DNA of 64,000 nucleotides from Bugula neritina (lineage: Eukaryota; Animalia; Bryozoa). Each line of letters starts with the position of its first letter. Within the stretch, counting starts at the first letter, position 1. This document shows, one piece after another, positions 3,422 through 63,324 of the stretch. Location of the stretch: contig OZ037766.1 in assembly GCA_964035545.1 (NCBI GenBank), forward strand, positions 3,224,001 through 3,288,000. Direction: 5' to 3'. A model generated the notes under the pieces. The model made no database searches and had not been told where the DNA came from. It saw only the letters and a program-made list of their open reading frames with translations. A program made the position numbers and the translations under genes.

Positions 3422-4619
3422 GATAGTGGTGTACTTTTCTATTTCTAATGAGGTGGTTATTATATACTCGTAGTTATTATCAATTTTTAAATATGAAGCA
3501 ATTGCCAGCTTCAACTTCCTGCTGGTAATTATAACTATCAAAAATATTTATTTCAATTATTTTCTAACAATTATAATACCCTTGGTTTAAAGAATAGAGA
3601 TGCAATCTTTCTTTAAATTTGAGAAAATTTAAATGTACTTATTTTTTCAGAGACAACTAATTTCTGCGCTAGAGTTCAAAGAAAAACTCCATGTTTGATC
3701 TTTTGGCTAATTTCCAGCAGCTATTTTAATGACCAGATAAATACAGGTTACCTAACTGTAAGCTGGACAATAGTAAATGCAGATTACAAGACAATTATCG
3801 AAGTTAAGCTGTGTAATAGCTGAGCTTGTTGAAACAATCTTCGGATTTTGAGGTGACTCAAGAAATTTTATTAAATAGCATTTTCTCATCATTATTAGTA
3901 GTTACATAATAAGCGGTCATTAAGTGAAAATGGAAATTATGTGCTACATTAATATAGCAATTAAAGAATTTGGCATATGCGGTTACTTTCGTTTATTAAA
4001 GTTAAGGAATGGAAAAACAGCAGATTTTAATGTCAACAATCATTAATATAGCAAACAACAGCAAAGGTAGTGGGACATAAAGATAAATTAAAAACTAAAC
4101 AATACTTTAGTTATATAAGGCAGGTCAGGCAGCAATATCAGTCCAGAGTTCATCTCAATAATGTTCTAAAATGTAAAACATATCTTATTCTAAATTTAAG
4201 CTTCAAGTTTAAAGTTGTCTTATAAAAACTTAAATTATTAATATAATTATTAGGTTGCATAAATTATAAACTCTTTCAGCTGCATACAATAACTGCCAGT
4301 AAACTCAATATGCTACAAAGTTTGAATGATTATACAGTTATGCTTCAAAATATTCTAAACTTTTTTTTAAAGTTTATTTTTAACAAAGCACCAGCAATTG
4401 ATTTTAGTATTTATTAAAATTTTTTGATTTTTTAGTTTGCAATTTAATTAAACATAACTTTATGTTATAGTAGGCTATAACTTATACAAGACAAAAACAT
4501 ATAAAAGGCTGCAAAGTGAGCAATTACTATAATCAGAGCTCACTTGTTAGCTAGATATTTTCAAAAACTGATTTTTATATTATAGGATGTAGCTAACTAC
4601 ACGTACCAGGTGTTACCAT

Positions 4620-4838
4620 CTAGTATCTTCCATAGTAAGAAGAGAGTTTGGATGGGTATAAGTTATAGCCCTTGCCAAAGTTGTATCCTCTGTAATTGTT
4701 GTACAGACCTCGGTTGTATAGACCTCGGTTGTAGTACTTGTAGTTAGATAGTCCGTATCCTCCATAGAGATAGTTGTTGTAGTAAGTAGCAGAGGTAAGT
4801 GCTAGGCAGACAGCCAATAGAATTGCAATGACCTTCAT
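4620..4838 (-). CDS. Secreted Tyr/Asn/Gly-rich cationic peptide, subfamily A (A1), 72 aa
   Basis: ORF MKVIAILLAVCLALTSA|TYYNNYLYGG...SSYYGRY with a hydrophobic signal peptide; mature part 17 Tyr/55 aa. Predicted structure on -: TATATAA 5495-5501, Inr TCATTC 5466-5471, donor GTAAGT 5412-5417, acceptor AG 4854-4855, 3'UTR donor GTACGT 4601-4606, acceptor 4166-4167, AATAAA 3992-3997. Confidence 0.93.
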   Translation of the reverse strand: MKVIAILLAVCLALTSATYYNNYLYGGYGLSNYKYYNRGLYNRGLYNNYRGYNFGKGYNLYPSKLSSYYGRY

Positions 4839-5465
4839 GTTTAGGTTTAAGTTCTGTAAAAAGAAGGAACTAGGTATAAAAGTTAGAAAATTACTTACAA
4901 CCTATTTCATTTTTTAAAACATATTTAAAAAAATCAAATTTGAACTTTTTAACCAAAAAATTACAATCTTTATTTTATCAAAATTTAACAAAAGACATTT
5001 TCAATAAAAATGAAAAAAAGTATAATTAGATATGAGTGAAAAAAGTTTTTACCCCTGAATAGCAATGTCTTTATATATATTATTTGTTAGATGCAAATAA
5101 GATGCTTTCAATAGTTCATAAGCAATTAAAGATTTTTTAAGATTATGATATTATCATAATCATAATGTTTTTGACATTTGGATTTTGTATTTCCAAATGC
5201 AAAAAACGATAAACACTGAACAAATTTCAAAATCAAAATTGTGATTTATAGGTTATATATAAAATGCCTAATTTTGCAATTACTTTTCAATTAAACAAAC
5301 AATGCAGTAAAATCAATGTCTATAAAACTTTTCTATTAAAATACACACTGCTAATTCTAATAAGAACAAAGTATTATATTATTATCTATTATACTATAAA
5401 ACAATGAAGTAACTTACTTTTGAGTTCAGGTAGATCACACTGTATACAGCTGATGTTCAACAAGT

Positions 5466-5554
5466 GAATGATTTATTCAAACAAACTATCTCTCTTATAT
5501 ACTTTTGGAGCTAGCTAGAGTTATTCCCTGCCTTTATCCTAGGTATGACTTGGC
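5466..5554 (-). promoter_or_regulatory. Core promoter of A1 (RTGAC motif, TATA, Inr)
   Basis: ATGACTTGGC 5545-5554 (+ strand reading), TATATAA 5495-5501, TCATTC 5466-5471; 32-bp spacing from TATA to +1. Confidence 0.75.
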
Positions 5555-8500
5555 TGTTTTGATTATAATTAATTTCTCATTAATTGCTACAGCTTATAAA
5601 ATGAGGAAAACACCTCAACCAACTAAATTACATTCAGATCACCATCATATTGATTTCCTCCATTTTATTTTTAATTATTCAACACTTTTCATTACTTTAG
5701 CCAAGGGGTATGGAAATGGAAAAATTCCAATTGCATAATTATTTTTTCTGCCTGGCTACAAAACATAAATTATTGTATCATTAAAATACAAAAAACAATT
5801 TCTAAGATTTTGATAACTGTCAGTACACACATGTATTATTTCATAGTGCTGTATAGATAATTATATGCATGGCTGTCAAATTGTAGTTAGAAATAAATAA
5901 AAGATTCTTATACAATTCAATCTCAGTCAAACCAACATAGCGAACACAAGTTCAACTGGCAGTTGCATTTCATTGGCCAAAAATACTGTCAATGAATATT
6001 TCCCCTAAACAACGGATTATAGAAGCATAAAAGAATGGAAGTTTTCCTACCATTAGGATATACAATACTCTTATATAAATAATGAACGAATTATCAGTAG
6101 CACTGCTTTAGTAGATTATAAGAGCATATGAGATTGCAGGGTGTTATGAATTTATCAGAGAGAATGTTTAAAAACTCCACAGCATAAGATCATTATTAGA
6201 TAAACTATAATGTAAGAAAACAAAAAAAGATGTTGTGAAGCACCAAAATGTACAAAATCAACAATAAAAAAGTATAAGGATATTTATTGAATATTAACCT
6301 TAACATGCTTCTGCATGTTACTACAGTTTCAAATAGTATTTAGTTTTCTCACTCTTTACATCTACTATATAGATAGTACAATTTTAAAGACCAGTTGAAT
6401 ATGTGTGATGAAAATTTTTTTTCCAATCAAAACCTTAAATAAAATAAATATATTATATATTAACATTACATAAAAATGTAAATAAGATTGTTTGTTTTTA
6501 CTGTATTTCATAAAACGTTTCTTCAATTTATAAAGCACTAACTAAACAACTATATAAATGCATTCATGCAAGTTATAGCAACCATCTATGTTTTTAGGAA
6601 ATAATTTAAAATATTTTGCATTGAATGTTGAAAAGGTAGCTGTAAAATCTGTTGATTAATTATGCAACACAATTCTCATTTTTAACAATTGCTGTGTCTT
6701 TACAAGTTATTACTTTTGTGACTCTGTTTTCCTATAATATGAATATAAATAGTATACTTGATTGTTGGTATGCCATTATATTATATGTTTTGCCAGAACA
6801 AGCACTAACTGAAATAAAATTGCCCATGCACTTCCTAGACTTAAGGCTTCAATTCTTTGCAAAAATTGCCTTTTTGCAGATGAAGTAATAGAATATGTCA
6901 TTTTCTTATTACACATGTCCAAACTGAAGCTTCCAATTTCCAAAAAATATAGATTTTTTAAGAAGTGCCTGTAAAACATTTTTGCAACTTTTAGTTTAAA
7001 CAACTCATGTACATTGCTTTATATAGCGCAAGAGTTGTTTTTAAGATATTGTGATTTTATCAAGCATTTTTTGAAACTGTAGGAAAGAAAACAAAAATCT
7101 TTTGTATCGAGATATTAATGCTTAATATACAATAATAATATATATACTTTGAACAGCAACAGGGAATAACACTTAAAACTAGAAAAAGAGTTTTATTCAG
7201 CCTGCTTTTTAATTGTAATTTATAATTGTAATTTATAGAATTACTGTAAAGATATAATAGTCATGTCTCTTAGTTCACTCCGGCTACCCCAGGCTTTGTG
7301 GTTGGAAGAGCTTGGGTTTATGGATTGCCTGCTGCTCTACTCGCTGCTATACCTCATCCATGCTTGCTTGTGTGGCTTTTAAATAGCATGTGATTCAATG
7401 AGCAATGGAGTTCTGTTGTGTAGCCAACTGACAGATGTGTACTGGTTTAGTTGCAGCTTTTAGAACAGTCACTCTCAGATCTCTGTTGTAAATAGTCAAG
7501 AATTTTGCATAACATATTGTGTATCAGCAAGAGACTAAAAGTTCTACTGTATATAATATAAGTAACTAAAGAACCAGTGAACCACTCCATGCAACACAGT
7601 GACGCACATACTCAATAGAGAATTCTCTATAAAATTACTTTTACTAAAAATACAAATCAATACTGAGCCTCCGAGCTTATGAAAAAATTGTAAATATATG
7701 GTCAGTAATTACCAGTATATAGTTGCATTATATAGTATTAAACTGTATCAATTTTAACAGCAATAACTAACTGTATTGTTGAACTCAAAAAATACAATAA
7801 AATAAAAAATTATGTAGATGAAAAGCATGAATCAGTGTTACAACACTGACAAAACAATTATAATAAATTTAATTTTTTTAATTAAATTGCAACTTTAGAT
7901 CGTCTAAATTAAGTTATTTACTTGGTAGCCAATTAAAATGAGCGTATAGGCTATTATTTTTGCAATATGAACAGCTAACAAACCTGCAATGACAATGCAT
8001 ACTAAATGCATAGAACATTGAGTGTGATCATACACTGCGGGATAATTTTTGGAAAACCTGGTTAATTATAGTAAACAACATTTAAATAGTAGCAGCTGCA
8101 ACTACGATTTGACTGCAAGAACTATTTTTCAGGTTTCAATAGTTGATGCATAAGTCAACAATGATTACAAGTAGTTTGATTACACTATATATAAGACTAT
8201 TAATAAAAAGCAGTCTGTAATTTCTTTTGTTATATATATACAAATACTATAACAACTCATTAGCAGTTATATCTGTCATATTAGTAAAGTTAGAAGTTTA
8301 AACTGAAATCTGTTCTAATTACACATATAGTAGCTGCTGCTTCATGTTTCAAATATATGATGCATGCATGAAAGCTTACTCAAAGCATAATATTATATAC
8401 GACTTTGAAATATATTGCACTTATAGTTGTTTGTATTTTTTTAAATAATAGTGGAAAATCTAAAATATTTTTATGTGCTAGAAAAAGAAGAGAATTAGTA

Positions 8501-9818: not shown

Positions 9819-9852
9819 TGATTGATTGATTAATTGATTGATTGATTGATTA

Positions 9853-9890
<38 letters not shown>
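9819..9890 (+). repeat. (GATT)n microsatellite in the 3'UTR intron of A2
   Basis: Direct reading. Confidence 0.95.
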
Positions 9891-10240: not shown

Positions 10241-10474
10241 TTAGTATCTTCCATAGTAAGATGAGAGCTTGGACGGGTATAAGTTATAGCCCTTGCCAAA
10301 GTTGAAGCCTCTGTAATTGTTGTATAGACCTCGGTTGTATATACCTCGGTTGTATATACCTCGGTTGTAGTACTTGTAGTTAGATAGTCCGTATCCTCCA
10401 TAGAGATAGTTGTTGTAGTAAGTAGCAGAGGTAAGTGCTAGGCAGACAGCCAATAGGATTGCAATGACCTTCAT
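10241..10474 (-). CDS. Secreted Tyr/Asn/Gly-rich cationic peptide, subfamily A (A2), 77 aa
   Basis: Start placed at the shared MKVIA ATG (CAT 10472-10474); the ORF-track extension lies in intron 1 (acceptor 10490-10491). Three YNRG(I/L) repeats. TATATAA 11098-11104, donor GTAAGA 11014-11019, 3'UTR donor 10222-10227, exon-3 acceptor 9498-9499, AATAAA 9330-9335. Confidence 0.93.
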   Translation of the reverse strand: MKVIAILLAVCLALTSATYYNNYLYGGYGLSNYKYYNRGIYNRGIYNRGLYNNYRGFNFGKGYNLYPSKLSSYYGRY

Positions 10475-11464: not shown

Positions 11465-11626
<162 letters not shown>

Positions 11627-12575: not shown

Positions 12576-12712
<137 letters not shown>

Positions 12713-13720: not shown

Positions 13721-13854
<134 letters not shown>

Positions 13855-15088: not shown

Positions 15089-15322
15089 ATGAAGGTCATT
15101 GCAATCCTATTGGCTGTCTGCCTAGCACTTACCTCTGCTACTTACTACAACAACTATCTCGATGGAGGATACGGACTATCTAACTACAAGTACTACAACC
15201 GAGGTCTATACAACCGAGGTCTATACAACCGAGGTCTATACAACAATTACAGAGGATACAACTTTGGCAAGGGCTATAACTTATACCCATCCAAACTCTC
15301 CTCTTACTATGGAAGATACTAA
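15089..15322 (+). CDS. Secreted Tyr/Asn/Gly-rich cationic peptide, subfamily A (A3), 77 aa
   Basis: Intact ORF with three YNRGL repeats. TATAAAA 14668-14674, Inr TCATTC 14698-14703, intron 14750-15073 (GTAAGA...TACAG), 3'UTR intron 15337-16135 (GTGAGT...TGTAG), AATAAA 16300-16305. Confidence 0.93.
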   Translation: MKVIAILLAVCLALTSATYYNNYLDGGYGLSNYKYYNRGLYNRGLYNRGLYNNYRGYNFGKGYNLYPSKLSSYYGRY

Positions 15323-17944: not shown

Positions 17945-18157
17945 TTAATATTTTCCATAGTAAGAAGAGTATTTGGGTCTGTAGTGGCTTCCGTAGTTGT
18001 ATCTTCTGTTGTAGGGTCTGTAACTGTTGTAACGCCTGTTGTAGTTGTTGTATCGCTTGTAGCTAGATGGCCTGTAGCTTTTGTAGCGGTAGTTGTTGTG
18101 GTAGGAAGCAGCAACAAGAGCAAGGCAGACAGCCAATAGGATTGCAATGACCTTCAT
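17945..18157 (-). CDS. Secreted Tyr/Arg/Asn/Ser-rich cationic peptide, subfamily B (B1), 70 aa
   Basis: MKVIAILLAVCLALVAA|SYHNNYRYKSYRPSSYKRY...SSYYGKY; two R->K changes relative to B2-B5. TATAAAA 18670-18676, donor 18599-18604, acceptor 18177-18178, 3'UTR donor GTAAGT 17910-17915, acceptor 17616-17617, AATAAA 17485-17490. Confidence 0.93.
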   Translation of the reverse strand: MKVIAILLAVCLALVAASYHNNYRYKSYRPSSYKRYNNYNRRYNSYRPYNRRYNYGSHYRPKYSSYYGKY

Positions 18158-19217: not shown

Positions 19218-19810
<593 letters not shown>

Positions 19811-22714
19811 TATAGAAATCAAACAAAGTACTATTCGAGTTGAGCTCAAACAGAGAAGCAATGTATTTTGATAAATATTTTGCTGCTGCAAAGTTAATCA
19901 ATAAGCAATGTCATCCGTTAATTGTAAATCAAAACTAATAACAAGTTTTTAGTCTTTCAGACCTATCACCTGCACGCATGTGTATTTGTTTAAGAGTAAT
20001 AATTATAGTGTGCTTGCACTCCTAAACTATATACAGTACAAACCGCTCTATGAAAGTATACTCATTATAGACTTCTTAAAAGTATTGCAATTGATGCCAT
20101 TTTGTATTTGAACATTTTTCAGTGCAGCTTATATAAACAGGCTATTAAAAATTGATGTTTCTTATAAATTTTAGGTAAAAATTAATAAAAACAAACTACA
20201 TTCTTAATTCTTGCTGTTATACTTGGAACAGTAAATATTTTTAGAGATATAAATTTTAGAACTATAATAGAAAATCATTCTATAGTTCATAATATTAGTG
20301 CTTGATAACTTGCCATATGTATACATCTCATTTCTCAAATAAGTTGCTCTAACCAAATCATTATTTTATCTATAGGGTAATGAAGTTTTACATGCATGAC
20401 TGTAATAATTATCTGCATGACCTATATAATATATTATATTGACCTATATCAGTTTATTTGTTGTATTTTGTCTCAAATCCTTTATTTACTTCAAAGTTTG
20501 CAACTTTAATTTAATGTTTTAAAATACTGCTTTTCTAGTCTATATATTTATATAATAATTATATAACTCTACAATTTTAGTTGATGCAAGAAAGTTGAAA
20601 TGTGGAAATTACTAAATCATATTGAAACTAGGAAATGTTGTCTATGAGGAAATGATATAATAACTTTAATCCTATGAGCCAAGTCCTGCATTAAATTCCA
20701 AACACAACAGTCAATATTTGAACTGGCTGATGGACAACATGACATAAGAGAAAAGGAATGTGCTAGAAGATATGATGGGGAACTTTCAAAGATTCTGATA
20801 GTATGACTAATTTATTGAAGTATTGGAGACTAATTGAAATATTATGCTTGAAGCATCTTGAAAGCATCTCTATTCGTACTTATTTTACAACTTTTGAAAA
20901 TGAAAATACAGATTATAACTGTAATAATTAGTCAGCGTGTATTGTAAATAAAAACAAATATTTACATTCACTCAAATATGCTATAAACTAAAGAATACAA
21001 ATTCTTCTATTTTATTTAAATCTGGAAAAATAGTTTTAGATAAAATGGGAGTCCACCTCGTAACTTTTTGTTAACTTTTATATGTTTTTGAAAGAATACT
21101 GAAAAACTGCAGAGTATAAATATAGTTGAATGCATCATGCATGCTATAGAACTCTATACATTAAAAAAATGTAATAGCCTGTTATAATGTAAACTTTACA
21201 AAAGCTAATAACAACTTTATAATTATGCACCATGATCACATCATGTTATAAACAAACCATAAGAGTTATTTTTTGGCCTCATGAATAAAATTAGCAATGA
21301 ACTAAATATATTACTTAGTATATATTAAAGTATAAGTATATTTTGTATTTTGATCACTTTTTATTCATTGATTTATATTCAATCTCAAAAACGAAGGAAG
21401 GTAAATTTGAGTTATCTGCAAACACGTTTTATTTCAATAAAACTATATTTATAAATTTTATAGCTATTACATTAAATGCGTGTTAAGTACATCTGATTTG
21501 AATGCATATCAGGATTATAATATACTTTTATGCTTTTGTATAAAATTTTGTTGCTAAATTTTTTTTAACTAAAGTTATTTTTATTTATAACAATTAACGT
21601 ATACAATATTATGAGAAACAAAAGCATTAATAGTTGCAAATTTGAAATGTTTACAATGCTTCAAGCCATCGATAAAAATAGTTATTATAGTTACCACTTT
21701 TTTACATTTTTTCTATCTAAGAATTTCCGTTCTCTAAAGTGACTAGTCATGACAAATGATAATATTTTTTAACATCATACTGGAATTTTCCTAAGAATAC
21801 AAATAAAATTTCCATAGTCATCAAAAAATATTGGAATCTGGAAAAAAAACTGATATATTGAATAGCTATTGTTGTTGACAAAAAATGCTACATAAATGCA
21901 CAAAACTTCTCCAGCTGATTTTCACGGCAAATGTAAGCTGTGGTCAAACTAATATTTAGGTTAAACCGTCCAGCAGGTATTTTGGGAAACTATAAGTCAT
22001 CTAGAAAGTGGCAGTAATACATCCTGATTCAACTTTTCTGCTAGCTGTAGATGAGCTTGGAATTTCTCTGCTCTTATAAGCATCATGAACTTAATTATAT
22101 CACCAGGTAACTATAGCTATATTTAAAATGTATTGTGGAAATATATAATTAATGTATTTATGATTGACAGGCTTATACAGTAGGCAGTATTCACTTTAAA
22201 AATAAAGCTATGGTATATGCATAAATTATAAATTGATTATAAATTATCTCTTGTGATCCTTTTTATCTCCAATAAGTACTAATATTCCTATATTTGAATG
22301 TTTACAGAGTTTCCAATTGCTTATTACCTAATTCTATATAGTACATAATCTAATTGTTTATAATTCCTGTCTTACTTTGTGAATTAGCAAACACAATTAT
22401 TATTGCCAAAATGAAGTGGAAGTTCACATCTATCTCTCCAATTCCAAATTGATAAAAGTGGTTTTTATGAAAATAATTTTTCTTTCATAATATTTTGAAT
22501 TTGAAACGCATTTGACTTATTAAGCTGTATTAAAAATTTGTTATAAAACTGGTTTACAAATTCTAACGATTGAAACTAAATAAAACTATTCAAGACATTT
22601 GCACTTAAACATTTTATCGTAGCTCATGTGTGTGAATTTATTTCCCTTTTAGAATCTTTAGCTTATATGAGCTTTATATATATCATTATAGCTATATAAG
22701 CTGACCGCAGTTAA

Positions 22715-24515: not shown

Positions 24516-24728
24516 TTAATATTTTCCATAGTAAGAAGAGTATTTGGGTCTGTAGTGGCTTCCGTAGTTGTATCTTCTGTTGTAGGGTCTGTAGCTGTTG
24601 TAACGCCTGTTGTAGTTGTTGTATCGCCTGTAGCTAGATGGCCTGTAGCTTCTGTAGCGGTAGTTGTTGTGGTAGGAGGCAGCAACAAGGGCAAGGCAGA
24701 CAGCCAATAGGATTGCAATGACCTTCAT
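24516..24728 (-). CDS. Secreted Tyr/Arg/Asn/Ser-rich cationic peptide, subfamily B (B2), 70 aa
   Basis: Mature 53 aa: 17 Tyr, 11 Arg, 2 Lys, no Asp/Glu. TATAAAA 25234-25240, Inr TCAGTT 25205-25210, donor 25151-25156, acceptor 24745-24746, 3'UTR donor GTGAGT 24481-24486, acceptor 24180-24181, AATAAA 24051-24056. Confidence 0.94.
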   Translation of the reverse strand: MKVIAILLAVCLALVAASYHNNYRYRSYRPSSYRRYNNYNRRYNSYRPYNRRYNYGSHYRPKYSSYYGKY

Positions 24729-28270: not shown

Positions 28271-28483
28271 TTAATATTTTCCGTAGTAAGAAGAGTATTT
28301 TGGTCTGTAGTGGCTTCCGTAGTTGTATCTTCTGTTGTAGGGTCTGTAGCTGTTGTAACGCCTGTTGTAGTTATTGTATCGTCTGTAGCTAGATGGCCTG
28401 TAACTTCTGTAGCGGTAGTTGTTGTGGTAGGATGCAGCGACAAGGGCAAGGCAGACAGCCAATAGGATTGCAATGACCTTCAT
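28271..28483 (-). CDS. Secreted Tyr/Arg/Asn/Ser-rich cationic peptide, subfamily B (B3), 70 aa
   Basis: Protein identical to B2. TATAAAA 29021-29027, Inr TCAGTT 28992-28997, donor 28938-28943, acceptor 28500-28501, 3'UTR donor 28236-28241, acceptor 27925-27926, AATAAA 27790-27795. Confidence 0.94.
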   Translation of the reverse strand: MKVIAILLAVCLALVAASYHNNYRYRSYRPSSYRRYNNYNRRYNSYRPYNRRYNYGSHYRPKYSSYYGKY

Positions 28484-32808: not shown

Positions 32809-33021
32809 TTAATATTTTCCATAGTAAGAAGAGTATTTGGGTCTGTAGTGGCTTCCGTAGTTGTATCTCCTGTTGTAGGGTCTGTAGCTGTTGTAACGCC
32901 TGTTGTAGTTGTTGTATCGCCTGTAGCTAGATGGCCTGTAGCTTCTGTAGCGGTAGTTGTTGTGGTAGGAAGCAGCAATGAGAGCAAGGCAGACAGCCAA
33001 TAGGATTGCAATGACCTTCAT
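32809..33021 (-). CDS. Secreted Tyr/Arg/Asn/Ser-rich cationic peptide, subfamily B (B4), 70 aa
   Basis: Mature peptide identical to B2; V->I in the signal peptide. TATAAAA 33525-33531, Inr 33496-33501, donor 33444-33449, acceptor 33038-33039, 3'UTR donor 32774-32779, acceptor 32457-32458, AATAAA 32328-32333. Confidence 0.94.
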   Translation of the reverse strand: MKVIAILLAVCLALIAASYHNNYRYRSYRPSSYRRYNNYNRRYNSYRPYNRRYNYGSHYRPKYSSYYGKY

Positions 33022-35940: not shown

Positions 35941-36172
35941 ATTGCAATCCTATTATAGCTGTCCACCTTCCACTTGTTTCTGCTACCTACCTACTATACA
36001 ACAACTATCTCTACAGAGATTACGGTAAAACCTTTGTTTTCGTCTAACTACAATTGTACTACAACAGCTACAGCAATCGTCATAATAGTTGCATAGTCCT
36101 AAAAATAAGATCCTATAGATATTGCAAAAGAGGCATTACTCAAATACTCAGTTTATTTTACTGGCAATACTA
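35941..36172 (+). pseudogene. Decayed Tyr-rich peptide gene (A-like 5' half)
   Basis: ATTGCAATCCTATT..GCTGTC..CCTT..CACTTGTTTCTGCTACCTAC matches the signal-peptide sequence. TACAACAACTATCTCTAC...TACGG...TCTAACTACAA..TACTACAAC matches subfamily A. No ATG, several indels. The 3' end is approximate. Confidence 0.75.
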
Positions 36173-38432: not shown

Positions 38433-38645
38433 TTAATATTTTCCGTAGTAAGAAGAGTATTTGGGTCTGTAGTGGCTTCCGTAGTTGTATCTCCTGTTGT
38501 AGGGTCTGTAACTGTTGTAACGCCTGTTGTAGTTGTTGTATCGCCTGTAGCTAGATGGCCTGTAGCTTCTGTAGCGGTAGTTGTTGTGGTAGGAAGCAGC
38601 AACAAGGGCAAGGCAGACAGCCAATAGGATTGCAATGACCTTCAT
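38433..38645 (-). CDS. Secreted Tyr/Arg/Asn/Ser-rich cationic peptide, subfamily B (B5), 70 aa
   Basis: Protein identical to B2. TATAAAA 39169-39175, Inr 39140-39145, donor GTAAGC 39086-39091, acceptor 38662-38663, 3'UTR donor 38398-38403, acceptor 38080-38081, AATAAA 37952-37957. Confidence 0.94.
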   Translation of the reverse strand: MKVIAILLAVCLALVAASYHNNYRYRSYRPSSYRRYNNYNRRYNSYRPYNRRYNYGSHYRPKYSSYYGKY

Positions 38646-39139
38646 TCTTACAATTGAGTTTCTACAAAAAGCAGAAAAAATTATTATACCAGAACGTTTT
38701 TTATGAAACAATAAAGTGTACAATTTTGTTGCATGACGTTAATTACAATTATTATTGCAAATCGAGTTGACTCACTGTGACCACCAAAATAGGAATCATG
38801 TGATAATGACTAAACTCAAATCTTGTTTAAAAATGCTCATGCAAAGAAAGGTTCATGATGTTTAGGTTATTTTTTTTATAGACTTAACTACTATAATATG
38901 CCCTATATATCTAATACATTTTTATTGTCACTTACATAATATATATCTATATACTATATATACTGAAATAGCTCAGCAAATCTCTATAGCAGATTGCCAT
39001 CAGGAACATTATTTAAGCTAGATTGGAGTAAAACGTTTTTATAACCTTATAATTATAGAAAGATGAACATGAAAGCATAATATTTGCTTACCTTAACAGC
39101 AAATGTGTCCGAGTATGTAGTTTGAGCTCTTCTTTAAGC

Positions 39140-39234
39140 AACTGACTCAACCTGACACATTCCTTCCTTTTTATACCTTCTGCATGGAAATGGGATTTTT
39201 TTCTGGGCTTGTTTCGTAATTCTAATGACTTTGT
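39140..39234 (-). promoter_or_regulatory. Core promoter of B5
   Basis: ATGACTTTGT 39225-39234, TATAAAA 39169-39175, TCAGTT 39140-39145. Confidence 0.75.
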
Positions 39235-41954: not shown

Positions 41955-42110
41955 ATTAAGGTCATTGCAATCCTATTGGCTATTTGTGCTGCCTTGCCTT
42001 TGCTTCCTACCACAACAACCAGATTGCTACGAAAGCTACAGACCATCTATAGTTACGCATGCAGGTGCTACGGCTGCAATTAGTGGATGCTGCAATAGTC
42101 ACAGATTTTA
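41955..42110 (+). pseudogene. Decayed Tyr-rich peptide gene (B-like)
   Basis: ATT(for ATG)AAGGTCATTGCAATCCTATTGGCT...GCCTTGCC..TGCTTCCTACCACAACAAC...AGCTACAGACCATCTA matches subfamily B. The start codon and the upstream acceptor (TATAA for TATAG, about 41931-41935) are mutated, and the frame is shifted. Confidence 0.8.
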
Positions 42111-45806: not shown

Positions 45807-46969
45807 CCCTGGGTAATTAACTCGTCATCAAAAGACCCTATAGGAGGCATAAAAATAGAAGTAGCTATATATTTCATTGAAAATTCCATCAAAGTTTATA
45901 TTCCAAGAATATTTTTGTTGGTAATTCTGGTGAATAGATTCTACCACTGAAGCACTTGTGTTTATATATCTTTTAATAATTTTATATTTTAGCTGAAATA
46001 AAGATGTTCAAATTTTTATATGTATCTAAAAGCAAAGCCTTGCAGCTTGAGCTTGCAAAGTAGATAATAGTGCTTAAATTTATTAAGACTCTATAGCAGA
46101 AATTGTGACATGAAAAAATTAATAAAGCATATATTTGTTATTCTGATATCTTTTAGAACGGATGATTTTTATAATTTCATACGAATCACATGACTTGTCT
46201 ATTTTGTCATCTAAGCAAAGTATTTCCTGATGATCGGCTCTTATTTTGGGATTTCTTCTGTCACATTCTAATCCAAATAATCTCTCAATTTTGCTGATCG
46301 TGCTTCCTGAAGTGGTGGCATGCAAGCACACTCCGTGATCAGCTTTACGGGAGTTATCTTTGCTGAGTCATGCAGGTAAATCTTTTTACATCATCAAAAC
46401 TCTTTCCTAGCAACACAGTCTCTGAGATTTTGGAATATTCCTCCATTACCAGATCTTTATAATTTCTATACTATGGAACTCTGGGAAAAATGTTTAATTT
46501 GCTATAGGCATAAGAACTATTATTCATATTATATTATAATATATTAAAATAAACATTTTATTATGTATGTGTACAAACATCTCAACAGATCAAACAACAT
46601 TTAACTCCATCCACATAACACCACTACTTGACTGCAATTATAAAAATGTGCAAAAATCCAAGTAAAAAGACTTCAATTTAGTTATACATTTATCTTTAAA
46701 TAAGTTTAACAATTACCACTATTCCAAATCACACATTTGGATAAGAATATAATACATTGATAATTGTTTACCTTTTGCAGTTTATGCTGCATTCAGTAAT
46801 AATTGCGTCAATTTGGCAGTTTATGCTGTGTTCAGCTATACATTTTATTATTTCTGCACCTTATATGGCAGCTCAATAAACAAGAATGATAAAACAGTTT
46901 TAAATCTTCAATATCGTGAGTTTGATACGACGTAACATATATATGATGAATAAATAAATAAATAAATAA

Positions 46970-47353
<384 letters not shown>

Positions 47354-48911
47354 ATTATATTTGTTTCAGCAACATTATTAATTGATACTGCATCATTGCA
47401 AGTGTAAAATAAAGTAATTTTGTTTGAAGAAAACACAACTCTAACAATGAAGATACTCAATAGATAGTTATTAAAACTGGTTTGGCTTAAATATAAACCT
47501 AAATCTTGAAAAACCTCTAGAAAAAGCTCCTTAAAGCAGTTGTCTACTGCTGTAGATAATTTTACAAGATAACACAATTCTTTTGTGCAAGCATGCAGCA
47601 ATATTGGTTTGCAAATAAAATCTGGAGCTTTTAAACATATAATGCACTTTTTTAAAGCATGAAGTTAGGTTAAATATTTTTCACAAATCCATAAATTTTG
47701 TTTAGCTGTGCAGCATGTCTATGAATTCTAAATCGTTTATAGAGCTACAATACATATTAAGTCTTCACCATTTTATTTGACTTTAAATAGGACTATACAA
47801 TTTGTATAATTGTGCTGGCACACATCATTATTTCTAAAATATCTTTCCTATTGTTTTTTTAGATTTTGGCTCAAGAAACTCATATGCTTTAATTCTCAAT
47901 ATACTTCATTTATCTGCAAATTTTTTAGTTGTGGTTGGTATATATATAGAAAATTGTTCTATTTACTTGATAGCTATATAGTAAGCTGTCTTAAAATGGC
48001 AGATGTAATGAATGTCAAATAAACAAGTAATTAAATAACAATGAATACATTTACTCAAACTAAATATACAATCTGCACATATAATTTTGACGATAGAAAA
48101 AACACGTATCACTGCTACAATTATATTTAGTATACTAAAAGCAATTGTTTTCATTGCTAAACTAGAATACTCAATAAAGCGTTTTTCATGAAACACCTGC
48201 TAATTTACTCTTATTTCACAGCTACCGTAAACCCCAAACTTGAACAGGTAGATATATATTATATGCAAAGTACAAGAACTTAAACACACTAGTGCAATAG
48301 CTCCATAATATTATTATGGTAACAATAAGGTAGATCAATAATTGAAATGAGCAGAAATTTATTTGGATAAATTTTATTGAAAATAACAATCAACAAGATA
48401 ACTAAACAAAAAACAAACTTTCAACCAAAATTTTTAAAATTATCAAGTAACAAAGTATAACCATTAGTTAGAAAAACTTGTGTAGTTGTCAGGATCCTCA
48501 GGCAGCATCGGTTCTTCAAAGTCAGCATTCCTGCATAAAGCAGAAAAAATTATAAACCACATTTTTTATGAATAAATGCAAATGTGATTTTGTTATTCAA
48601 CTATAATAATTATGATATTTCATGAAAAAGAGGAATTTTTTATAACTTTTTCTCAATATAGAATTATTTCAGCTGTAACTAGAGCAGAAAATGTGAAACC
48701 TTGATGAGTCTAAAAGAGTTTGATATTATTGGAGCAAATATATATCAAATTAAATTGAATATATGAAATTGAAATAAAATTGAATAATTAATTATAATCA
48801 CCCAATAATAACTGTATATGCGTGCATATATATTATACAATAATATTGTATTATAGCAAACCCCTTCATTTATAAATGTTACTTACATTTATCAGGTTTT
48901 AAAACAAAAAT

Positions 48912-49121
48912 TTATCCTCTGTAATAATAGCTGCCGCGTCTCCTGTGTGTGTTGTGGTATCCCCTGTTGTTGTAAGATCTGTAGCTGTTGTAACCCCTGT
49001 TGTAGTTGTTGTAGCGTCTGTAGCTAGATGGCCTGTAGCTGTTGTAGCGGTAGTTATTGTAACGGTATGCAGCCGAGGCAAGCACAAGGCAGACAGCCAA
49101 TAGGATTGCAATGACCTTCAT
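48912..49121 (-). CDS. Secreted Tyr/Arg/Asn-rich cationic peptide, subfamily D (D1), 69 aa
   Basis: MKVIAILLAVCLVLASA|AYRYNNYRYNSYRPSSYRRY...HRRRGSYYYRG; mature 52 aa with 15 Tyr and 12 Arg; shares SYRPSSYRRYNNYNR with subfamily B. TATAAAA 49839-49845, donor GTGAGC 49767-49772, acceptor 49138-49139, 3'UTR donor 48881-48886, acceptor 48531-48532, AATAAA 48373-48378. Confidence 0.93.
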   Translation of the reverse strand: MKVIAILLAVCLVLASAAYRYNNYRYNSYRPSSYRRYNNYNRGYNSYRSYNNRGYHNTHRRRGSYYYRG

Positions 49122-49810
49122 GTTTACAGTTGGAAGTCTAAAACACAATAAATAAAAGTTGATACAGTGAACGAAACAGGTTATATTTCTCATAATTAAT
49201 TATTAAAAATAATGGTTTGTAGCTGGAACTGTTAGGCCAAATACATTAGTGCATGTTAGAGTTGGATTCCAAATATATTAACTAAACTCTATCAGAAGTT
49301 ATAAACCCAATTAATATTTTTTTAATTTTGTAGCCAGACTGTGGTATTTGCGCAGTTTAGAGTTTTATTTAAAAAGTTGTTTATTTGAAAGCTGCTTTTA
49401 AAAATTTATACAATCAAATTATTATTATTAAATCTTTGCAATTGCTGTGCTAAAAGCTCCCTTCATTAGAAAAAAATTAACTCCTATAGATTGAAACAAT
49501 TATATTGCACTCATTTATAATGCATCTCTATAAGTGAAACAAGTAACTTACATGCAATGCCTAAAATATGACTATACAGTACAACGGAAACATAACATTA
49601 TTTCATTGTTGCTTATATGCATGAATATTATAATCATTTTCTTATGAAACAAAATAAATCTTTTATTTTTTAACGTATAAAAAGAAATACATTTTGAATT
49701 TTTTTTAAATACACTCCAAAAAATATTCTATTAAAAAAATTAAAAGAAGTATATATATAACCGATAGCTCACCTTGGAGAATGATGCTGTAGTAAAACAA
49801 GTATAAAACT

Positions 49811-49895
49811 CTGTGAAAGCTTTTGAAAATTTCTCACTTTTTATACTTCTTTCAAACAGGACACAGAACTTTCTAATTAACCTAAATGACTTGCC
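49811..49895 (-). promoter_or_regulatory. Core promoter of D1
   Basis: ATGACTTGCC 49886-49895, TATAAAA 49839-49845, TCACAG near 49811-49816. Confidence 0.7.
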
Positions 49896-52808
49896 AAAAT
49901 GTAGGAATTATTTATTGTTTCCTATTTGTGTTCTTGCATAAATCAGTTTTACTAATTGAAAGTGCACATCGGGAATGTTTCCAATACACTAATCCTGTCA
50001 TTGATGTTTATTAGCATGACCAGGTGACCAGACGGGCCGGCGTTAATAGCCAAATGTGGCATTTGTTACTCATCAGCTTGTCTGTCTCTGCATCTTTTTA
50101 ACAGAAGTACAAACGTTTTGAAATGTCAACTCTAATTGATTTGTTTATTGCACATATCCTAGCTAGTGCAGTATATCAACATATATATAATTATGCTCTT
50201 TTGATAGTTTAGCTTTCCAACTTAACAACATAGTAAGTAATAAAATAATTATGATATAGAAGTGGCTACCTAATTGATACATCTATGGCATTGATGAGTG
50301 TGAGCTTTGCATATATTGCTAAATTGCATTTTGGGCTTATTAAGGAACGCTTGTTTGTATTATTTACTCCTGCTGATCAGATTAAACGCAACTTTTCTCT
50401 GAACAGATGCGTTTCCAAAATTGGCATATTATAGTTTAAGGGAAATCTTGCATAAAACATTAAAAATCTTTTAACACTTTATACTGTACTATGACTGTAT
50501 CAGGTAACTTTTATAAATTAATATACTTGGGAAGATTTCAGATTGAAGGTGCAAGTAGATTATTTATTAATGCTAATGTTTTTAAACATCAACACACAGA
50601 CCATATTGAGAATAAAACATACTCACTATATATTAACTGTATGAAGTTTGGTTTTCTCAACTGCATTTCCCATCTAAAATTCCAAACTCATCGTGCTAGT
50701 TGATTCTTGGTGCTCATACTTTTGATAAGAAACCATAAATTGTACTATTTGCCACTGGATTTTAATCAACGACACAAAAATTCAAATTATAAAATGCTAT
50801 TTGTTTATGCAGATCATTTTATATTAAAGCCCTTCTCAGCATATATTATATATAACTGTGTTACTCTTTTAAGGAACTACACCTGCCATAAGTAAAATAA
50901 ATCCCGCTGTGCCTTAAAGCAAACATTCTAACCCTAAATATAATGCATAGGTTCATATCAACACAGCTCTCTCCTCACCATTAACCAGAGAATATTAATG
51001 CATGCATGTGTGTCAGCAAAGAATTGTTACTGTGTCAGCACGGATGCTGTATGGCACAGATGCCTAAATGTAGTGATAGCACGGATGCTGTATACTGGCT
51101 ACACATGCAGATGCAGGGTGAATGGATGGAGAACACAACTCAACCTTTTACCTAATGCCTCCAGTTTATTTCTCTCACAAAACTCAAACTGTAACCTAAA
51201 ACCGTAAAAAAGTCTTGTTAAATTAACATTAATCAACACAGCTATATTTCTGACAAAACATTTATTTAATAACGTTAGAAACAAAAGATAGTATGATACT
51301 TGAAATAATTAAAATTATTTGGACAATAAAGTTTAAGTTGCCTGCATCTTTGACAAGAGGAAAATTGAGCAATACTGACTCATTTAAACAAAAACTACCA
51401 GTAAAAAGCTTTCATCACACAATACTTTTTTTAAAGCTACAACAAAAAACTCCTGCAACAATTTGTGTTTATATAATAGCAATTGAACCTATATTGGTAG
51501 ATTTCAACAATCATTGCCCAACAATACTTTTTCAAATGTTATTGCTGCAGCTGCCATTATATTGCGCAATGCTAATTCTTCCATAATTCTACAGGCGTAC
51601 AATCTATCATGCAGATGGGGCTCATTTGTCTATAGGAAGACAGCTCATCTAGGAAGAAGAAAAACTGATTTCTCCATCTATTAAGGTGATTGTAATATTA
51701 TAGGCCTATATACCTTTAATTCGTGTAGTATTTTGAGTGACAAATGTGAGAGCTTATTAACTTGCATAGGTAGGGTCGAAAAGTTCAATAGTTTCGGTTT
51801 TACACATGTTTAATTGCAAGTAAAAGTATATTTTTAAAACTTCATAACTCTAAGGACCTCCATTAGAAAGTGTTAGAAAACATAGAACATTTGTTGATAT
51901 ATAAATCATAAATTTATATTGTCAGTCAAGTACTCAATTTATGTTGTTGTAAGTAAATAATGAATGTTAGAAGCGTTCAACACCTAAATCTAGCTCGAAA
52001 GCAAGATTATTGAGGAAGCAACTCCTGGCTGACTACAACACAAGCTAAAGCCTGCTTTAATACCCCTTTCTAAAAGTACTAAAGAATCTTGGAATTTATT
52101 ATAATTTGTAGCATTCTACTCTTTAGTTCGATGTTATGGTTTTGTATATTTGAAATCCCTCTACTACAATATTGAACCAAGATACAACCTGATCTATATA
52201 TAAGTCTAAAGTGCAATTATATAATGCTCTATTTATTATAAAGTGTTGTAAAATAGAGAGAAATATAGTTTTAATGATATGATTTTAGTTTATTGAAGTC
52301 AGCACAAAAAGTAGAGTTACAAGTTTCAAAATTCAGAGATCTAACAATATGTAACATAAAGAGAGCAGCAACTTAACAATGTTTTATCAAAAAGGAGTTT
52401 TTAAGTAGAGTAAGGAAATCATAAGAATTTTAGGAGCGAAAGGCTTCAACGTCAGGAGTTATCTGTAAAATAAATAAAAATAATTTTGATATTATTGCAT
52501 AGTATTAGTAATTTATGAAGATGAAATTTGTTTTTGCGGACAAATTATAATAAAAATGTTTTATTATCATTATTATTGTTAAAAAGCGAACTAAAGTAAA
52601 TTTTTTAACTTGCATGAATAATATATGCAGAAGTAATTGCAAATTCAGCACTATAAGTTATAAATACTATCATTTTATCAATTATAATATATTTTTACTA
52701 TATATCAATACATCTCAGTCCAGTTCACTATACCAAAAGTAATATTATATAGCTGAATCCGGTAACACTCACCCAGGGCAATACGTACACTGCAGTTTCA
52801 AGAATGGC

Positions 52809-57121: not shown

Positions 57122-57364
57122 ATGAAGGTAATTGCAATTCTATTGGCCGTCTGCCTTTCACTCGTTTCTGCTATCTACTACCCAAACCACAACTACCATA
57201 ATAAGGGCTATGGACCTTCCAACTATGGTTACTATGGACCATCTAACTATGGTTACTATGGTAACCAAAACAATGGCCACGGACCCTATGGGTACTACAA
57301 CAACCACAACAAACATCATCCAAAGACTGGTTTTTCTGGCTCTAATTTTAGTTTTGGAAAATAA
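57122..57364 (+). CDS. Secreted Tyr/His/Gly/Asn-rich peptide, subfamily C (C3), 80 aa
   Basis: Intact ORF. TATAAAA 56539-56545, intron 56616-57105 (GTAAGA...TGTAG), 3'UTR intron 57397-57699 (GTGAGT...TGCAG), AATAAA 57866-57871. Confidence 0.93.
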   Translation: MKVIAILLAVCLSLVSAIYYPNHNYHNKGYGPSNYGYYGPSNYGYYGNQNNGHGPYGYYNNHNKHHPKTGFSGSNFSFGK

Positions 57365-60351
57365 ACCATCCTTGAAATGGCAGTATACTGCCCTGAGTGA
57401 GTGTTACCTCATTTAACTAATATTTTACAGTGTATTGAGCTGGACTGGGATGTATAATTGATGTAGTAGAAACCTATAATTAATAGCATGAATTTATTGC
57501 TACTAGTGCTGAATACACTATTGTGTCTGCAAAATATTCATGCAAGTTGAAAAAGTCACATTAGTACGTTTCTTAACAATAATATCGATACATAAATTAA
57601 CAATTTTATTATGACTTCAGTCCGCAGCAATAACTTCGTCCTGATGCTTACTCTAATATTGTGCAACATATTAATTTTTCTTTTTAATTTATTTTGCAGG
57701 TAACTCCTGATGTTGAAACCTGGATCTCCTTATTCTTCTAATTTGTCATAACTACGTAAATTTTAAAGCTTCTTTGTTATAAAATATGTTTAAATTGCTG
57801 CTCCATTTGCACTATGTTGTTATATCTTTTAATTATGAAACTTTCAGCTCTATTTCTGTAACTTTAATAAACTATAAATATTTTATAAAAGTAATTTTTT
57901 TTTTTAAAACACTTTTTAACAAACAGAGCGCTTTATAATAATAGCATTGCAAACTTATATAGATGAAAGAATACAGACCTATAAATATTTCAATATATTC
58001 ATAAATAACTTAATTAACTTACAAACCTTGGTGTTTCTAGCAACACTGACTAAATAGCAGAGCAATATATATAATAATTAAACTCGAAAACTTTCTAGGA
58101 CTTTTAAAATTTAATCTTATACATGGTATATAATAAAAGCATCGGCTGGTATTGTCATCAGCTTGGAGTTGTTCCTTCAATGTTATTGATTTTAAGTCAG
58201 CTTTAGGAGTTGAAGTTTTCTGAAATGCAATGTTTATTAACAACAACATATGATTTTAACTAATATTACATTAATCTATACTGTATACAGTTTAGATTAA
58301 TATAATATAATATATTATATATAAAATAATACATATAACTTCTTGTATGCTTCCTGAAACATTCTAAAGGTGGGCTCTAGCTAGAGTTATGAAGTTTTAA
58401 AAATAAGTTTTGCAAAACAACATTAGAACATATTATAACAATCAACTTTCCTACAGAACTATCAACTTTTTATAATCTTACATTTGTCACTGAAATTATT
58501 ACATAGTTTGTTGAAATTAGTATATCATTATATAATCGTTCTTATAGATGCAGACCTCATTCTAAAATTTTCAATTTGCTAGATCTCAGTTTTAGTTATT
58601 TTTATATTTTTTGTCATCAAAGATTAAATTAACTCTATATATGATCATAAAACATTATTCATCAGTGATCTCATATGTGAACAAAATTGTATAGTTTGTT
58701 TTAACACAACAATTAAAATTAGTGATGCATTTCAATGTTTAATATTATATTATTAAGCTACATCAATCACTTATGGTGCTGTTCTAGGATAATGCAGTAA
58801 ATTGAGACTTGCTATATTTAATTTATTTTTGATGCAATATTGCGTCTTGAAGTGAAATTTGCACAAGTTTTTATAATCATTATCTTACAGATTCTGCTAA
58901 TGCATATAAACAAAGTTTATAGTTAATTCCTCAATTGCATTGCAATTATGTGAGCCTTAATATTATATCTTTTTCAAAAATATTCTAATTTCTAGCTTTT
59001 GTGTTGTTCTTTATCAGTTGTTAAAAACATAAAAAGTGCTAATTGTAAAACAGTTAAATGCATGATATATTGCATTGTATAATTTGCTCTAAATTCAAAT
59101 GTAATTATTTAAAAACTGTGAATAAAAAAACAAATCTTGTCAATTTAACTCTGCATGGGTTCTTTTAGCTAAAAATTGTATTCTTTATAGCATTTATAAT
59201 AATAGAGCTCATCATCAAAAGACCCTATAGGAGGTGTAAAAATAGAAGTAGCTATTTCATTGGAAATTCCATAGAAGCTTATATTCCAAAAATATTTTTG
59301 TTGGTAATTCTGGTGAATAGATTCTACCACTGAAGCACTTGTGTTTATATATCTTTTAATAATTTTATATTTTAGCTGAAATAATGATGTTCAAATTTTT
59401 ATATGTATCTAAAAGCAAAGCCTTGCAGCTTGAGCTTGCAAAGTAGATTATAGTGCTTAAATTTATTAAGACTCTATAGCAGAAATTGTGACATGAAAAA
59501 ATTAATAAGACATATATTTGTTATTTTGATATCTCTTAGAACGGATGATTTTTTATAATTTCATACGAATCACATGACTTGTCTATTTTGTTATCTAAGC
59601 AAAGTATTTCCTGATGATCGGCTCTTATTTTGGGATTTCTTCTGTCACATTCTAATCCAAATAATCTCTCAATTTTGCTGATCGTGCTTCCTGAAGTGGT
59701 GGCATGCAAGCACACTCCGTGATCAGCTTTACGGGAGTTATCTTTGCTGAGTCATCCAGGTAAATCTTTTTACATCATCAAAACTCTTCCCTAGCAACAC
59801 AGTCTCTGAGATTTTGGAATATTCCTCCATTACCAGATCTTTATAATTTCTATACTATGGAACTCTGGGAAAAATGTTTAATTTGCTATAGGCATAAGAA
59901 CTATTATTCATATTATATTATAATATACTAAAATAAACATGTTATTATGTATGTGTACAAACATCTCAACAGATCAAACAACATTTAACTCCATCCACAT
60001 AACACCACTACTTAACTGCAATTATAAAAATGTGCAAAAAACCAAGTAAAAAGACTTTAAATTAGTTATACATTTATCTTTAAATAAGTTTAACAATTAC
60101 CACTATTCCAAATCACACATTTGGATAAGAATATAATACATTAATAATTGTTTACCTTTTGCAGTTTATGCTGCATTCAGTAATAATTGCGTCAATTTGG
60201 CAGTTTATGCTGTGTTCAGCTATACATTTTATTATTTCTGCACCTTATATGGCAGCTCAATAAACAAGACTGATAAAACAGCTTTAGATCTTCAATATCG
60301 TGAGTTTGATACGACATAACATATATGATGAATAAATAAATAAATAAATAA

Positions 60352-60785
<434 letters not shown>

Positions 60786-62335
60786 TTATATTTGTTTCAG
60801 CAACATTATTAATTGATACTGCATCATTGCAAGTGTAAAATAAAGTAATTTTGTTTGAAGAAAACACAACTCTAACAATAAAGATACTCAATAGATAGTT
60901 ATTAAAACTGGTTTGGCTTAAATATAAACCTAAATTTTGAAAAACCTCTAGAAAAAGCTCCTTAAAGCAGTTGTCTACTGCTGTAGATAATTTTACAAGA
61001 TAACACAATTCTTTTGTGCAAGCAGCAATATTAGTTTGCAAATAAAATCTGGAGCTTTTAAACATATAATGCACTTTTTAAAGCATGAAGTTAGGTTAAA
61101 TATTTTTCGCAAATCCATAAATTTTGTTTAGCTGTGCAGCATGTCTATGAATTCTAAATCGTTTATAGAGCTACAATACATATTAAGTCTTTATCATTTT
61201 ATTTGACTTTAAATAGGACTATACAATTTGTATAATTGTGCTGGCACACATCATTATTTCTAAAATATCTTTCCTATTGTTTTTTTAGATTTTGGCTCAA
61301 GAAACTCATATGCTTTAATTCTCAATATACTTCATTTATCTGCAAATTTTTTAGTTGTGGTTGGTATATATATAGAAAATTGTTCTATTTACTTGATAGC
61401 TATATATAGTAATCTGTCTTAAAATGGCAGGTGTAATGAGTGTCAAATAAACAAGTAATTAAATAACAATGAATACATTTACTCAAACTAAATATACAAT
61501 CTGCACATATAATTTTGACTATAGAAAAAAACACGTATCACTGCTACAATTATATTTAGTATACTAAAAGCAATTGTTTTCATTGCTAAACTAGAATACT
61601 CAATAAAGCGTTTTTCATGAAACACCTGCTAATTTATTCTTATTTCACAGCTACCGTAAACCCCAATCTGGAACAGGTAGATATATATTATATGCAAAGT
61701 ACAAGAACTTAAACACACTAGTGCAATAGCTCCATAATATTATTATGGTAACAATAAGGTAGATCAATAATTGAAATGAGCAGAAATTTATTTGGATAAA
61801 TTTTATTGAAAATAACAATCAACAAGATAACTAAACAAAAAACAAACTTTCAACCAACATTTTTAAAATTATCAAGCAACAATGTAACAATTAGTTAAAG
61901 CAAATTGTGTAGTTGTCAGGATCCTCAGGCAGCATCGGTTCTTCAAAGTCAGCATTCCTGCATAAAGCAGAAAAAATTATAAACCACATTTTTTATGAAT
62001 AAATGCAAATATGATTTTGTTATTCAACTATAATAATTATGATATTTCATGAAAAAGATGAATTTTTTATAACTTTTTCTCAATATAGAATTATTTCAGC
62101 TGTAACTAGAGCAGAAAATGTGAAGCCTTGATGAGTCTAAAAGAGTTTGATATTATTGGAATAAATATATATCAAATTAAATTGAATAATTGAAATTGAA
62201 ATAAAATTGAATAATTAATTATAATCACCCAATAATAACTGTATATGCGTGCATATATATTATACAATAATATTGTATAGCAAACCCTTTCATTTATAAA
62301 TGTTACTTACATTTATCAGGTTTTAAAACAAAAAT

Positions 62336-62545
62336 TTATCCTCTGTAATAATAGCTACCGCGTCTCCTGTGTGTGTTGTGGTATCCCCTGTTGTTATAGG
62401 ATCTGTAGCTGTTGTAACCCCTGTTGTAGTTGTTGTAGCGTCTGTAGCTAGATGGCCTGTAGCTGTTGTAGCGGTAGTTGTTGTAACGGTAAGCAGCTGA
62501 GGCAAGCACAAGGCAGACAGCCAATAGGATTGCAATGACCTTCAT
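62336..62545 (-). CDS. Secreted Tyr/Arg/Asn-rich cationic peptide, subfamily D (D2), 69 aa
   Basis: Protein identical to D1. TATAAAA 63268-63274, donor 63196-63201, acceptor 62562-62563, 3'UTR donor 62305-62310, acceptor 61958-61959, AATAAA 61802-61807. Confidence 0.93.
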   Translation of the reverse strand: MKVIAILLAVCLVLASAAYRYNNYRYNSYRPSSYRRYNNYNRGYNSYRSYNNRGYHNTHRRRGSYYYRG

Positions 62546-63239
62546 GTTTACAGTTGGAAGTCTAAAACACAATAAATAAAAGTTGATACAGTGAACGAAA
62601 CAGGTTATATTTCTCATAATTAATTATTAAAAATAATGGCTTGTAGCTGGAACTGTTAGGCCAATACATTAGTGTTAGAGTTGGATTCCAAATATATTAA
62701 CTAAACTCTATAATCAGAAGTTATAAACCCAATTAATATTTTTTTAATTTTGTAGCCAGACTGTGGTATTTGCGCAGTTAAGAGTTTTATTTAAAAAGTT
62801 GTTTATTTGAAAGCTGCTTTTAAAAATTTATTCAATCAAATTATTATTATTAAATCCTTGCAAATTTGCTGTGCTAAAAGCTACCTTCATTAGAAAAAAA
62901 TTAACTCCTATAGATTGAAACAATTATATTGCACTCATTTATAATGCATCTCTATAAGTGAAACAAGTATATAACTTACATGCAATGCCTTAAATATGAC
63001 TATACAGTACAACGGAAACATAACATTATTTCATTGTTGCTTATATGCATGAATATTATAATTATTTTCTTATGAAACAAACTAAATCTTTTATTTTTTA
63101 ACGTATAAAAAGAAATACATTTTGAATTTTTTTAAATACACTCCAAAAAATATTCTAATAAAAAAATTAAAAGAAATATATATATATAACCGATAGCTCA
63201 CCTTGGAGAATGATGCTGTAGTAAAACAAGTATAAAACT

Positions 63240-63324
63240 CTATGAAAGCTTTTGAAAATTTCTCTCTTTTTATACTTCTTTCAAACAGGACACACTACTT
63301 TCTAATTAACCTAAATGACTTGCC
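63240..63324 (-). promoter_or_regulatory. Core promoter of D2
   Basis: ATGACTTGCC 63315-63324, TATAAAA 63268-63274. Confidence 0.7.

Follow-up and report, generated by a model that had tools for sequence, protein, structure and literature searches.

What is the function of a tandem array of genes for small, tyrosine-rich secreted peptides in the bryozoan Bugula neritina? The array lies in a 64,000-nucleotide stretch of contig OZ037766.1 (positions 3,224,001 to 3,288,000), referred to here as the window, and coordinates are those of the window unless a contig is named. A six-frame scan of the window identified 13 intact open reading frames (ORFs) of 69-81 amino acids (aa) with one common, typical 17-aa signal peptide. 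Two degenerate copies were located by BLAST within the window: pseudogene 1 (~35941-36090, +), which has no start codon and carries an in-frame stop, and pseudogene 2 (41955-42050, +), which has lost its start codon and is frameshifted. The 13 mature peptides are 52-64 aa long, contain 20-32% Tyr and no Cys, and carry a net charge of +4 to +13; their sole acidic residue is an Asp in gene A3. These counts and compositions match a preliminary description made from the sequence of the window, which had proposed an adhesive or sclerotisation system based on 3,4-dihydroxyphenylalanine (DOPA). The explanation that we favor, with a probability of about 0.6, is that the peptides are secreted in bulk as precursors of an extracellular cuticle or cement, and that they are condensed in granules and oxidatively cured.

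The genes group into the four subfamilies proposed earlier, A (n = 3), B (n = 5), C (n = 3) and D (n = 2), each of which forms a separate clade in the tree (support of 92/94 for B; A, C and D starred). All window genes have the same layout, consisting of a TATA box, a non-coding exon 1, a single coding exon and an intron soon after the stop codon. The TATA box is located 420-730 nt upstream, the splice donor follows it by 71-85 nt, and the acceptor precedes the ATG by 15-19 nt. A second donor motif is found 13-36 nt past the stop, and the intron in the 3' untranslated region (UTR) is predicted from such donor motifs only; an intron so near the stop evades nonsense-mediated decay under the usual 50-nt rule. 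In subfamily A, the coding exon of the Tyr/Gly/Asn/Leu-rich A1 (4620-4838, −; 72 aa) is preceded by a TATA box at 5501 and an exon 1 donor at ~5417 and followed by a donor 13 nt after the stop. The corresponding TATA and donor positions are 11104 and ~11019 for A2 (10241-10474, −; 77 aa), and 14668 and ~14750 for A3 (15089-15322, +; 77 aa).

Transcription was assessed with run X1 (2015; one run from one study, with the same organism label as the DNA run X2), which was compared with 6 kb of the window containing two genes and one pseudogene. Sequencing depth was confined to the B and C coding exons and exon 1, and was zero in 23 of the 30 bins, over intron and intergenic DNA. In gene B5 (38433-38645, −; 70 aa), the 5' structure spans 38662-39175 (−), with the TATA box at 39175, non-coding exon 1 ending at 39092 and the intron at 39091-38662. 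X1 contigs depart from the genome at 38663 and continue into B-type exon 1 sequence, with 24 of 26 letters matching exon 1 of B5 by eye, and two bins in or beside the B5 intron have zero depth. C-type contigs in X1 correspond to gene C1 (44086-44328, −). Because the coverage is exon-only and the splice from exon 1 to exon 2 is seen directly, the genes are transcribed; the preliminary description had made its proposal depend on the presence of such transcripts. A total of 1889 of the 501,730 X1 contigs fall on these 6 kb with a summed depth of 1e5-1e6, which suggests very abundant mRNA, contig depth being unable to rank genes or to give a measured level. The X1 depth at pseudogene 2 was taken as cross-mapping from the shared signal-peptide region and not as transcription of the pseudogene.

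The nature of the copies is most evident in subfamily B, which in addition to B5 includes the Tyr/Arg-rich B1 (17945-18157, −; TATA 18676), B2 (24516-24728, −; TATA 25240), B3 (28271-28483, −; TATA 29027) and B4 (32809-33021, −; TATA 33531), all encoding 70 aa. The introns of the B copies are 74-88% identical compared to 95-98% for their coding exons, and B2, B3 and B5 encode one identical protein from sequences with 4-8 silent differences. Contig depth in DNA run X2 was 437 and 526 at the coding exons of B and C, compared to 135 for unique intergenic DNA, a three- to fourfold (3-4x) excess. Given the diverged B introns and this excess, the copies are real duplicates and an assembly artefact can be ruled out as their source. 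The mature regions are under purifying selection, with pN/pS values of 0.25 (A), 0.05 (B), 0.20 (C), 0 (D) and 0.40 (E, a subfamily found outside the window); these are simple pairwise counts and the pairs are not independent. Such a pattern is that of dosage amplification, in which a product is needed in quantity, and not of a diversifying immune family.

The selection data bear directly on an alternative explanation, in which the products are surface peptides, cationic and antimicrobial or antifouling, by which the colony controls its biofilm or symbionts; they may be amidated and, as in ascidian styelins, may contain DOPA. Set beside the family by description, linear cationic antimicrobial peptides such as ascidian styelins and clavanins and the Gly-rich arthropod peptides are similar in size, in charge and in richness in aromatic residues, His and Arg, and share possible C-terminal amidation. 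The bryozoan peptides are likewise secreted, small and Cys-free; Phe-rich and Trp-rich members occur, and the genes are in tandem arrays, as is common among defence peptides. All eight C genes in the genome (8/8) end in Phe-Gly-Lys and all three D genes (3/3) in Arg-Gly, termini that can give C-terminal amides by established processing rules. The window copies of these are C1 (80 aa, Gly/Tyr/His/Asn-rich; TATA 44990), C2 (52809-53054, −; 81 aa; TATA 53704), C3 (57122-57364, +; 80 aa; TATA 56539), the Tyr/Arg/Asn-rich D1 (48912-49121, −; 69 aa; TATA 49845) and D2 (62336-62545, −; 69 aa; TATA 63274); D1 lies in a 4.8-kb segmental duplicate (45821-50571) that is 95% identical to 59208-63991, which holds D2. 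Diversifying selection among paralogues, which is common though not universal in antimicrobial peptides, was not seen at mature pN/pS of 0-0.40; rather, purifying selection is strong, and old duplicates have kept near-identical proteins (B2, B3 and B5 differ by silent changes only), with no hint of arms-race diversification. The precursors also have no acidic pro-region, match no antimicrobial family in the sequence searches or Pfam scans, and have a relative of the same layout that is strongly acidic (see below). An antimicrobial role is the main rival explanation, although we consider it unlikely.

The family extends well beyond the window. Searches of 216 Mb of B. neritina genome (published size, 214 Mb; PMC7576161) brought the family to six subfamilies with a minimum of 31 intact genes, nearly all of the family being on a single scaffold; the count covers genes whose mature parts were read and is a lower bound. 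On the family scaffold, the main array occupies 3.23-3.35 Mb, a satellite cluster 2.37-2.44 Mb and a pair 15.78 Mb. The genome-wide totals are eight A, five B, eight C, three D, five E (longer, Tyr/Arg/Asn) and two F (Arg/Gly-rich) genes, and in one of the F pair Phe (18%) exceeds Tyr (8%). Pooled over 1847 residues, the mature composition is 24% Tyr, 17% Asn, 14% Gly, 11% Arg and 10% Ser with traces of Asp/Glu. Three or four further genes with a related signal peptide (G000 C2:19848036-19866392) and one weak signal-peptide match (G000 C2:2364760) lie outside the count of 31. The named homologues are hypothetical proteins of B. neritina (EB796_003886, _020104, _002701, _002702 and others) with identities of up to 94%, and unnamed JGI copies are 96-97% identical. 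The suggestion that such genes escape annotation does not apply to several members, which are hypothetical proteins in the draft genome. The draft-genome D protein P0004 (EB796_020104) extends 11 residues beyond the stop of D1, into what is 3' UTR here, and this extension is either a stop-loss allele or an error.

The distribution of the family was further explored by profile searches against 1.84 billion and 5.8 billion proteins. Every named match belonged to B. neritina, and the rest were a small number of unnamed proteins from marine metagenomes. In Pfam, with E cut-offs of 1 and 10, the only matches were insignificant signal-peptide ones. The homologues P0018, P0026 and P0027 have kept the signal peptide and are encoded on contigs with the same splice layout, and their mature parts contain 14% Trp and 8-9% Tyr. 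One Trp-rich homologue comes from sample BRYA16-1, which we infer to be the Bryant 2016 plastic-debris set; in plastic debris, bryozoans accounted for 30-90% of eukaryote rRNA reads (PMC5069773), so a second bryozoan species is its likely source. P0017 comes from a sample of marine biofilm; its layout is similar, and its mature part is of a Tyr/Phe/Arg/Gly type. Across the Tyr-, Phe- and Trp-rich members tabulated, aromatic residues make up 20-35% and Arg + Lys 12-24%, with the His-rich C peptides lower in Arg/Lys. What the members conserve is not Tyr itself but a combination of aromatic and cationic residues with Gly/Asn/Ser spacers, a pattern that suits cation-π condensation without requiring DOPA. 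Two other matches were set aside. One, P0014 in the search with representatives, is a repetitive ORF that has no relation to the family; the other, an unnamed arthropod cluster in the ESM Atlas at 0.76, was counted as no evidence.

A relative of opposite charge is encoded ~7 kb from satellite gene A5 (L020:1332-1622, +; G000 C2:2449332). This gene for a secreted 96-aa protein has a TATA box, a donor ~87 nt later, an acceptor 10 nt before the ATG and a donor 29 nt after the stop, and its product has the Met-Lys start and Cys11 of the family. The mature part is 77 residues long, 32 of them Ser and 10 Asp, and is Gly-rich too, with Tyr/Lys/Arg-rich ends. A second copy was not found in the genome, and a homologue was not found elsewhere within the length limit of the search. 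The gene probably shares ancestry with the family, and its product may be phosphorylated and co-secreted as a candidate polyanion or mineral-binding partner. The latter possibility would fit an organic matrix of the calcified skeleton, with the basic Tyr-rich peptides as framework and the Ser/Asp-rich relative binding calcium, and the epidermis does make both cuticle and calcium carbonate (PMC3133996). Such a matrix role is improbable, as the 31 other intact genes are essentially without acidic residues, and it would in any case overlap with a role in cuticle.

Repeated origins of secreted, cationic families rich in Tyr are known among marine invertebrates, and two of these families invite comparison. 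Mussel foot protein-3 (mfp-3) is small, secreted, Cys-free, cationic and Tyr/Arg/Asn/Gly-rich, with many variants that include Trp-rich forms. The bryozoan family resembles mfp-3 and mfp-5 in being small, secreted, cationic, Cys-free and multi-variant, with 20-30% Tyr and richness in Gly/Asn/Arg; it differs in belonging to another phylum and in giving no match to the mfp-3 family of Pfam, even at an E cut-off of 10. No named mollusc homologue was found in the homology and profile searches, and membership of mfp-3 can therefore be ruled out. The preliminary description did not recognise the signal peptide as a mussel one, and neither Pfam, signal peptide nor homologues connect the family to mfp-3 or mfp-5, and any likeness is at most convergent. 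The UniRef name 'Foot protein-3' for the B. neritina member EB796_004446 is most likely an automatic label.

The second comparison is with tubeworm cement. Sabellariid cement combines basic Gly/Tyr-rich Pc-1/2, acidic phosphoserine-rich Pc-3 and His-rich Pc-4/5 by complex coacervation (PMC12621633), and the bryozoan genome encodes a comparable secreted set (cf. Pc/Sa-1 to -5), in which basic proteins rich in Gly/Tyr or in His stand beside an acidic, Ser-rich one. The acidic Ser/Asp-rich relative strengthens this parallel, as polycationic and Ser-rich polyanionic secreted partners, a feature of complex-coacervate cements, are both encoded. In contrast, Sabellaria cement precursors are 128-405 aa long (PMC12621633) compared to 63-100 aa in the bryozoan, in which a common gene layout and signal peptide apparently serve all types, the acidic one having been found as a single copy. 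Homology to Pc/Sa proteins was not detected, as the profile searches gave no named annelid match. Nothing about the family came up in the literature when its locus tags, or the adhesive, cuticle or tyrosinase of bryozoans, were searched for, most subscription journals being outside the search. The earlier proposal is upheld in part, as regards a lineage-specific, secreted, multi-component and transcribed family with mfp-3- or Pc-like composition: the family is real, expressed and apparently bryozoan-specific, with a putative function. By analogy with mussel and sandcastle-worm glue proteins, its members are good but unproven candidates for cuticle or glue.

Enzymes that could cure such a secretion were surveyed in the genome. 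One tyrosinase locus was found (L021, G000 C7 near 2.09 Mb), and no paralogue of its copper-A exon was detected; as the search used one exon and a Pfam model, this exon-wise count is a lower bound and weak evidence. The exon upstream of the tyrosinase encodes a Cys-rich, VWC-like segment. Exon matches grouped into ~17 haem peroxidase and ~11 multicopper oxidase loci, many in tandem, and these tandem genes are candidate curing enzymes. The arrays of multicopper oxidases are at G000 C3:22.33-22.39 Mb and C5:7.14-7.18 Mb, and those of haem peroxidases at C9:8.06-8.14 Mb, C3:1.19-1.24 Mb and C7:9.24-9.28 Mb. A further multicopper oxidase match, on a small contig (G000 C13:35207-35560), lies in an intronless open frame of 619 aa and may be of bacterial origin. 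With one tyrosinase found compared to numerous loci for peroxidases and multicopper oxidases, cross-linking through dityrosine or a laccase is as plausible as curing through DOPA.

In a cuticle or cement precursor, aromatic residues (Tyr, also Phe/Trp) and Arg/Lys spaced by Gly/Asn/Ser could drive cation-π condensation in secretory granules, with the acidic relative perhaps serving as polyanion and the His-rich C peptides perhaps binding metal. Curing after release would proceed by Tyr oxidation, either by tyrosinase to DOPA and then quinone or by peroxidase/laccase cross-linking. B. neritina secretes pellicle, attachment disc and cuticle (PMC3133996), and candidate sites include the cuticle or sclerotised zooid parts, the larval pellicle or attachment disc, and rhizoid cement; a role in cuticle or sclerotisation, itself tentative, seems somewhat likelier than one strictly as glue. 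Several points weigh against this explanation. Composition alone cannot tell structural from antimicrobial peptides; a single tyrosinase (a lower bound) compares with the expanded tyrosinases of mussels and sabellariids (PMC11667028); none of the oxidase loci found sits at the peptide clusters; and the acidic partner, found as a single copy, is tied to the family by position and gene layout only.

Other points speak against a strictly DOPA-based version. Paralogues and homologues have Phe or Trp in place of Tyr, the termini of C and D could serve as amidation signals, like those of many antimicrobial peptides, and peroxidases and multicopper oxidases are numerous while a tyrosinase expansion was not seen in the weak, exon-wise test. 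Adjacency of Tyr to Arg/Lys/His, described earlier as frequent, holds in B (12 of 17 Tyr, p ~0.04 versus shuffled sequences) and marginally in D (p ~0.08), and is at or below chance in A and C. Curing by tyrosinase to DOPA and quinone has somewhat less than an even chance within the favored explanation.

Two further roles were weighed against the same features. A secretion for brooding or reproduction, such as an egg envelope, the lining of the ovicell or provisions for the embryo, would have precedent in the tanned Tyr/Gly-rich egg-coat proteins known from other invertebrates, and we regard it as very improbable. Cleavage of neuropeptide or hormone precursors at dibasic sites is even harder to credit: B and D each have three such sites, but A has none and C at most one, repeated Gly-dibasic units are absent, and copy number and apparent abundance are well above signalling needs. 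More ambitious, and rather doubtful, is the idea that bryozoans independently built a full wet-adhesive or tanning toolkit from one gene cassette, with Tyr, Phe and Trp interchangeable as the aromatic residue. A cassette of one signal peptide and introns flanking one coding exon would have given rise to Arg/Tyr peptides for interfaces, to bulk peptides of the Gly/Tyr and His-rich kinds, and to an acidic Ser/Asp polyanion; together these would coacervate and be cured perhaps by peroxidase or laccase and not by an expanded tyrosinase family. If true, mussels and sandcastle worms would be joined by another convergent origin, and the attachment of bryozoans would have its first molecular account within the reach of our literature search.

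Within the same literature, no glue or cuticle protein has been identified in B. neritina, a model organism for fouling, and the family supplies named, PCR-ready candidates for either. The Phe-rich paralogues, the Trp-rich homologue and the acidic Ser/Asp-rich gene beside the satellite cluster are newly found here, and the natural occurrence of Tyr-, Phe- and Trp-rich forms of one scaffold is relevant to whether wet adhesion and coacervation are driven by DOPA or by cation-π interaction. Should the peptides prove antimicrobial, they would constitute a new family in bryozoans, and this in an animal whose defensive symbiont has to be tolerated. Existing RNA-seq of B. neritina larvae (SAMN02724736-8; PMC4192642) and of Bugulina stolonifera zooid types (PMC7534450) could assign the family to a stage or tissue. 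As minor observations on the window itself, its GC content is 28% compared to 35% published for the B. neritina genome, and long AC and TA microsatellites are present at 46970-47349, 60352-60780 and 19218-19814, with AC arrays within the 4.8-kb segmental duplicate.

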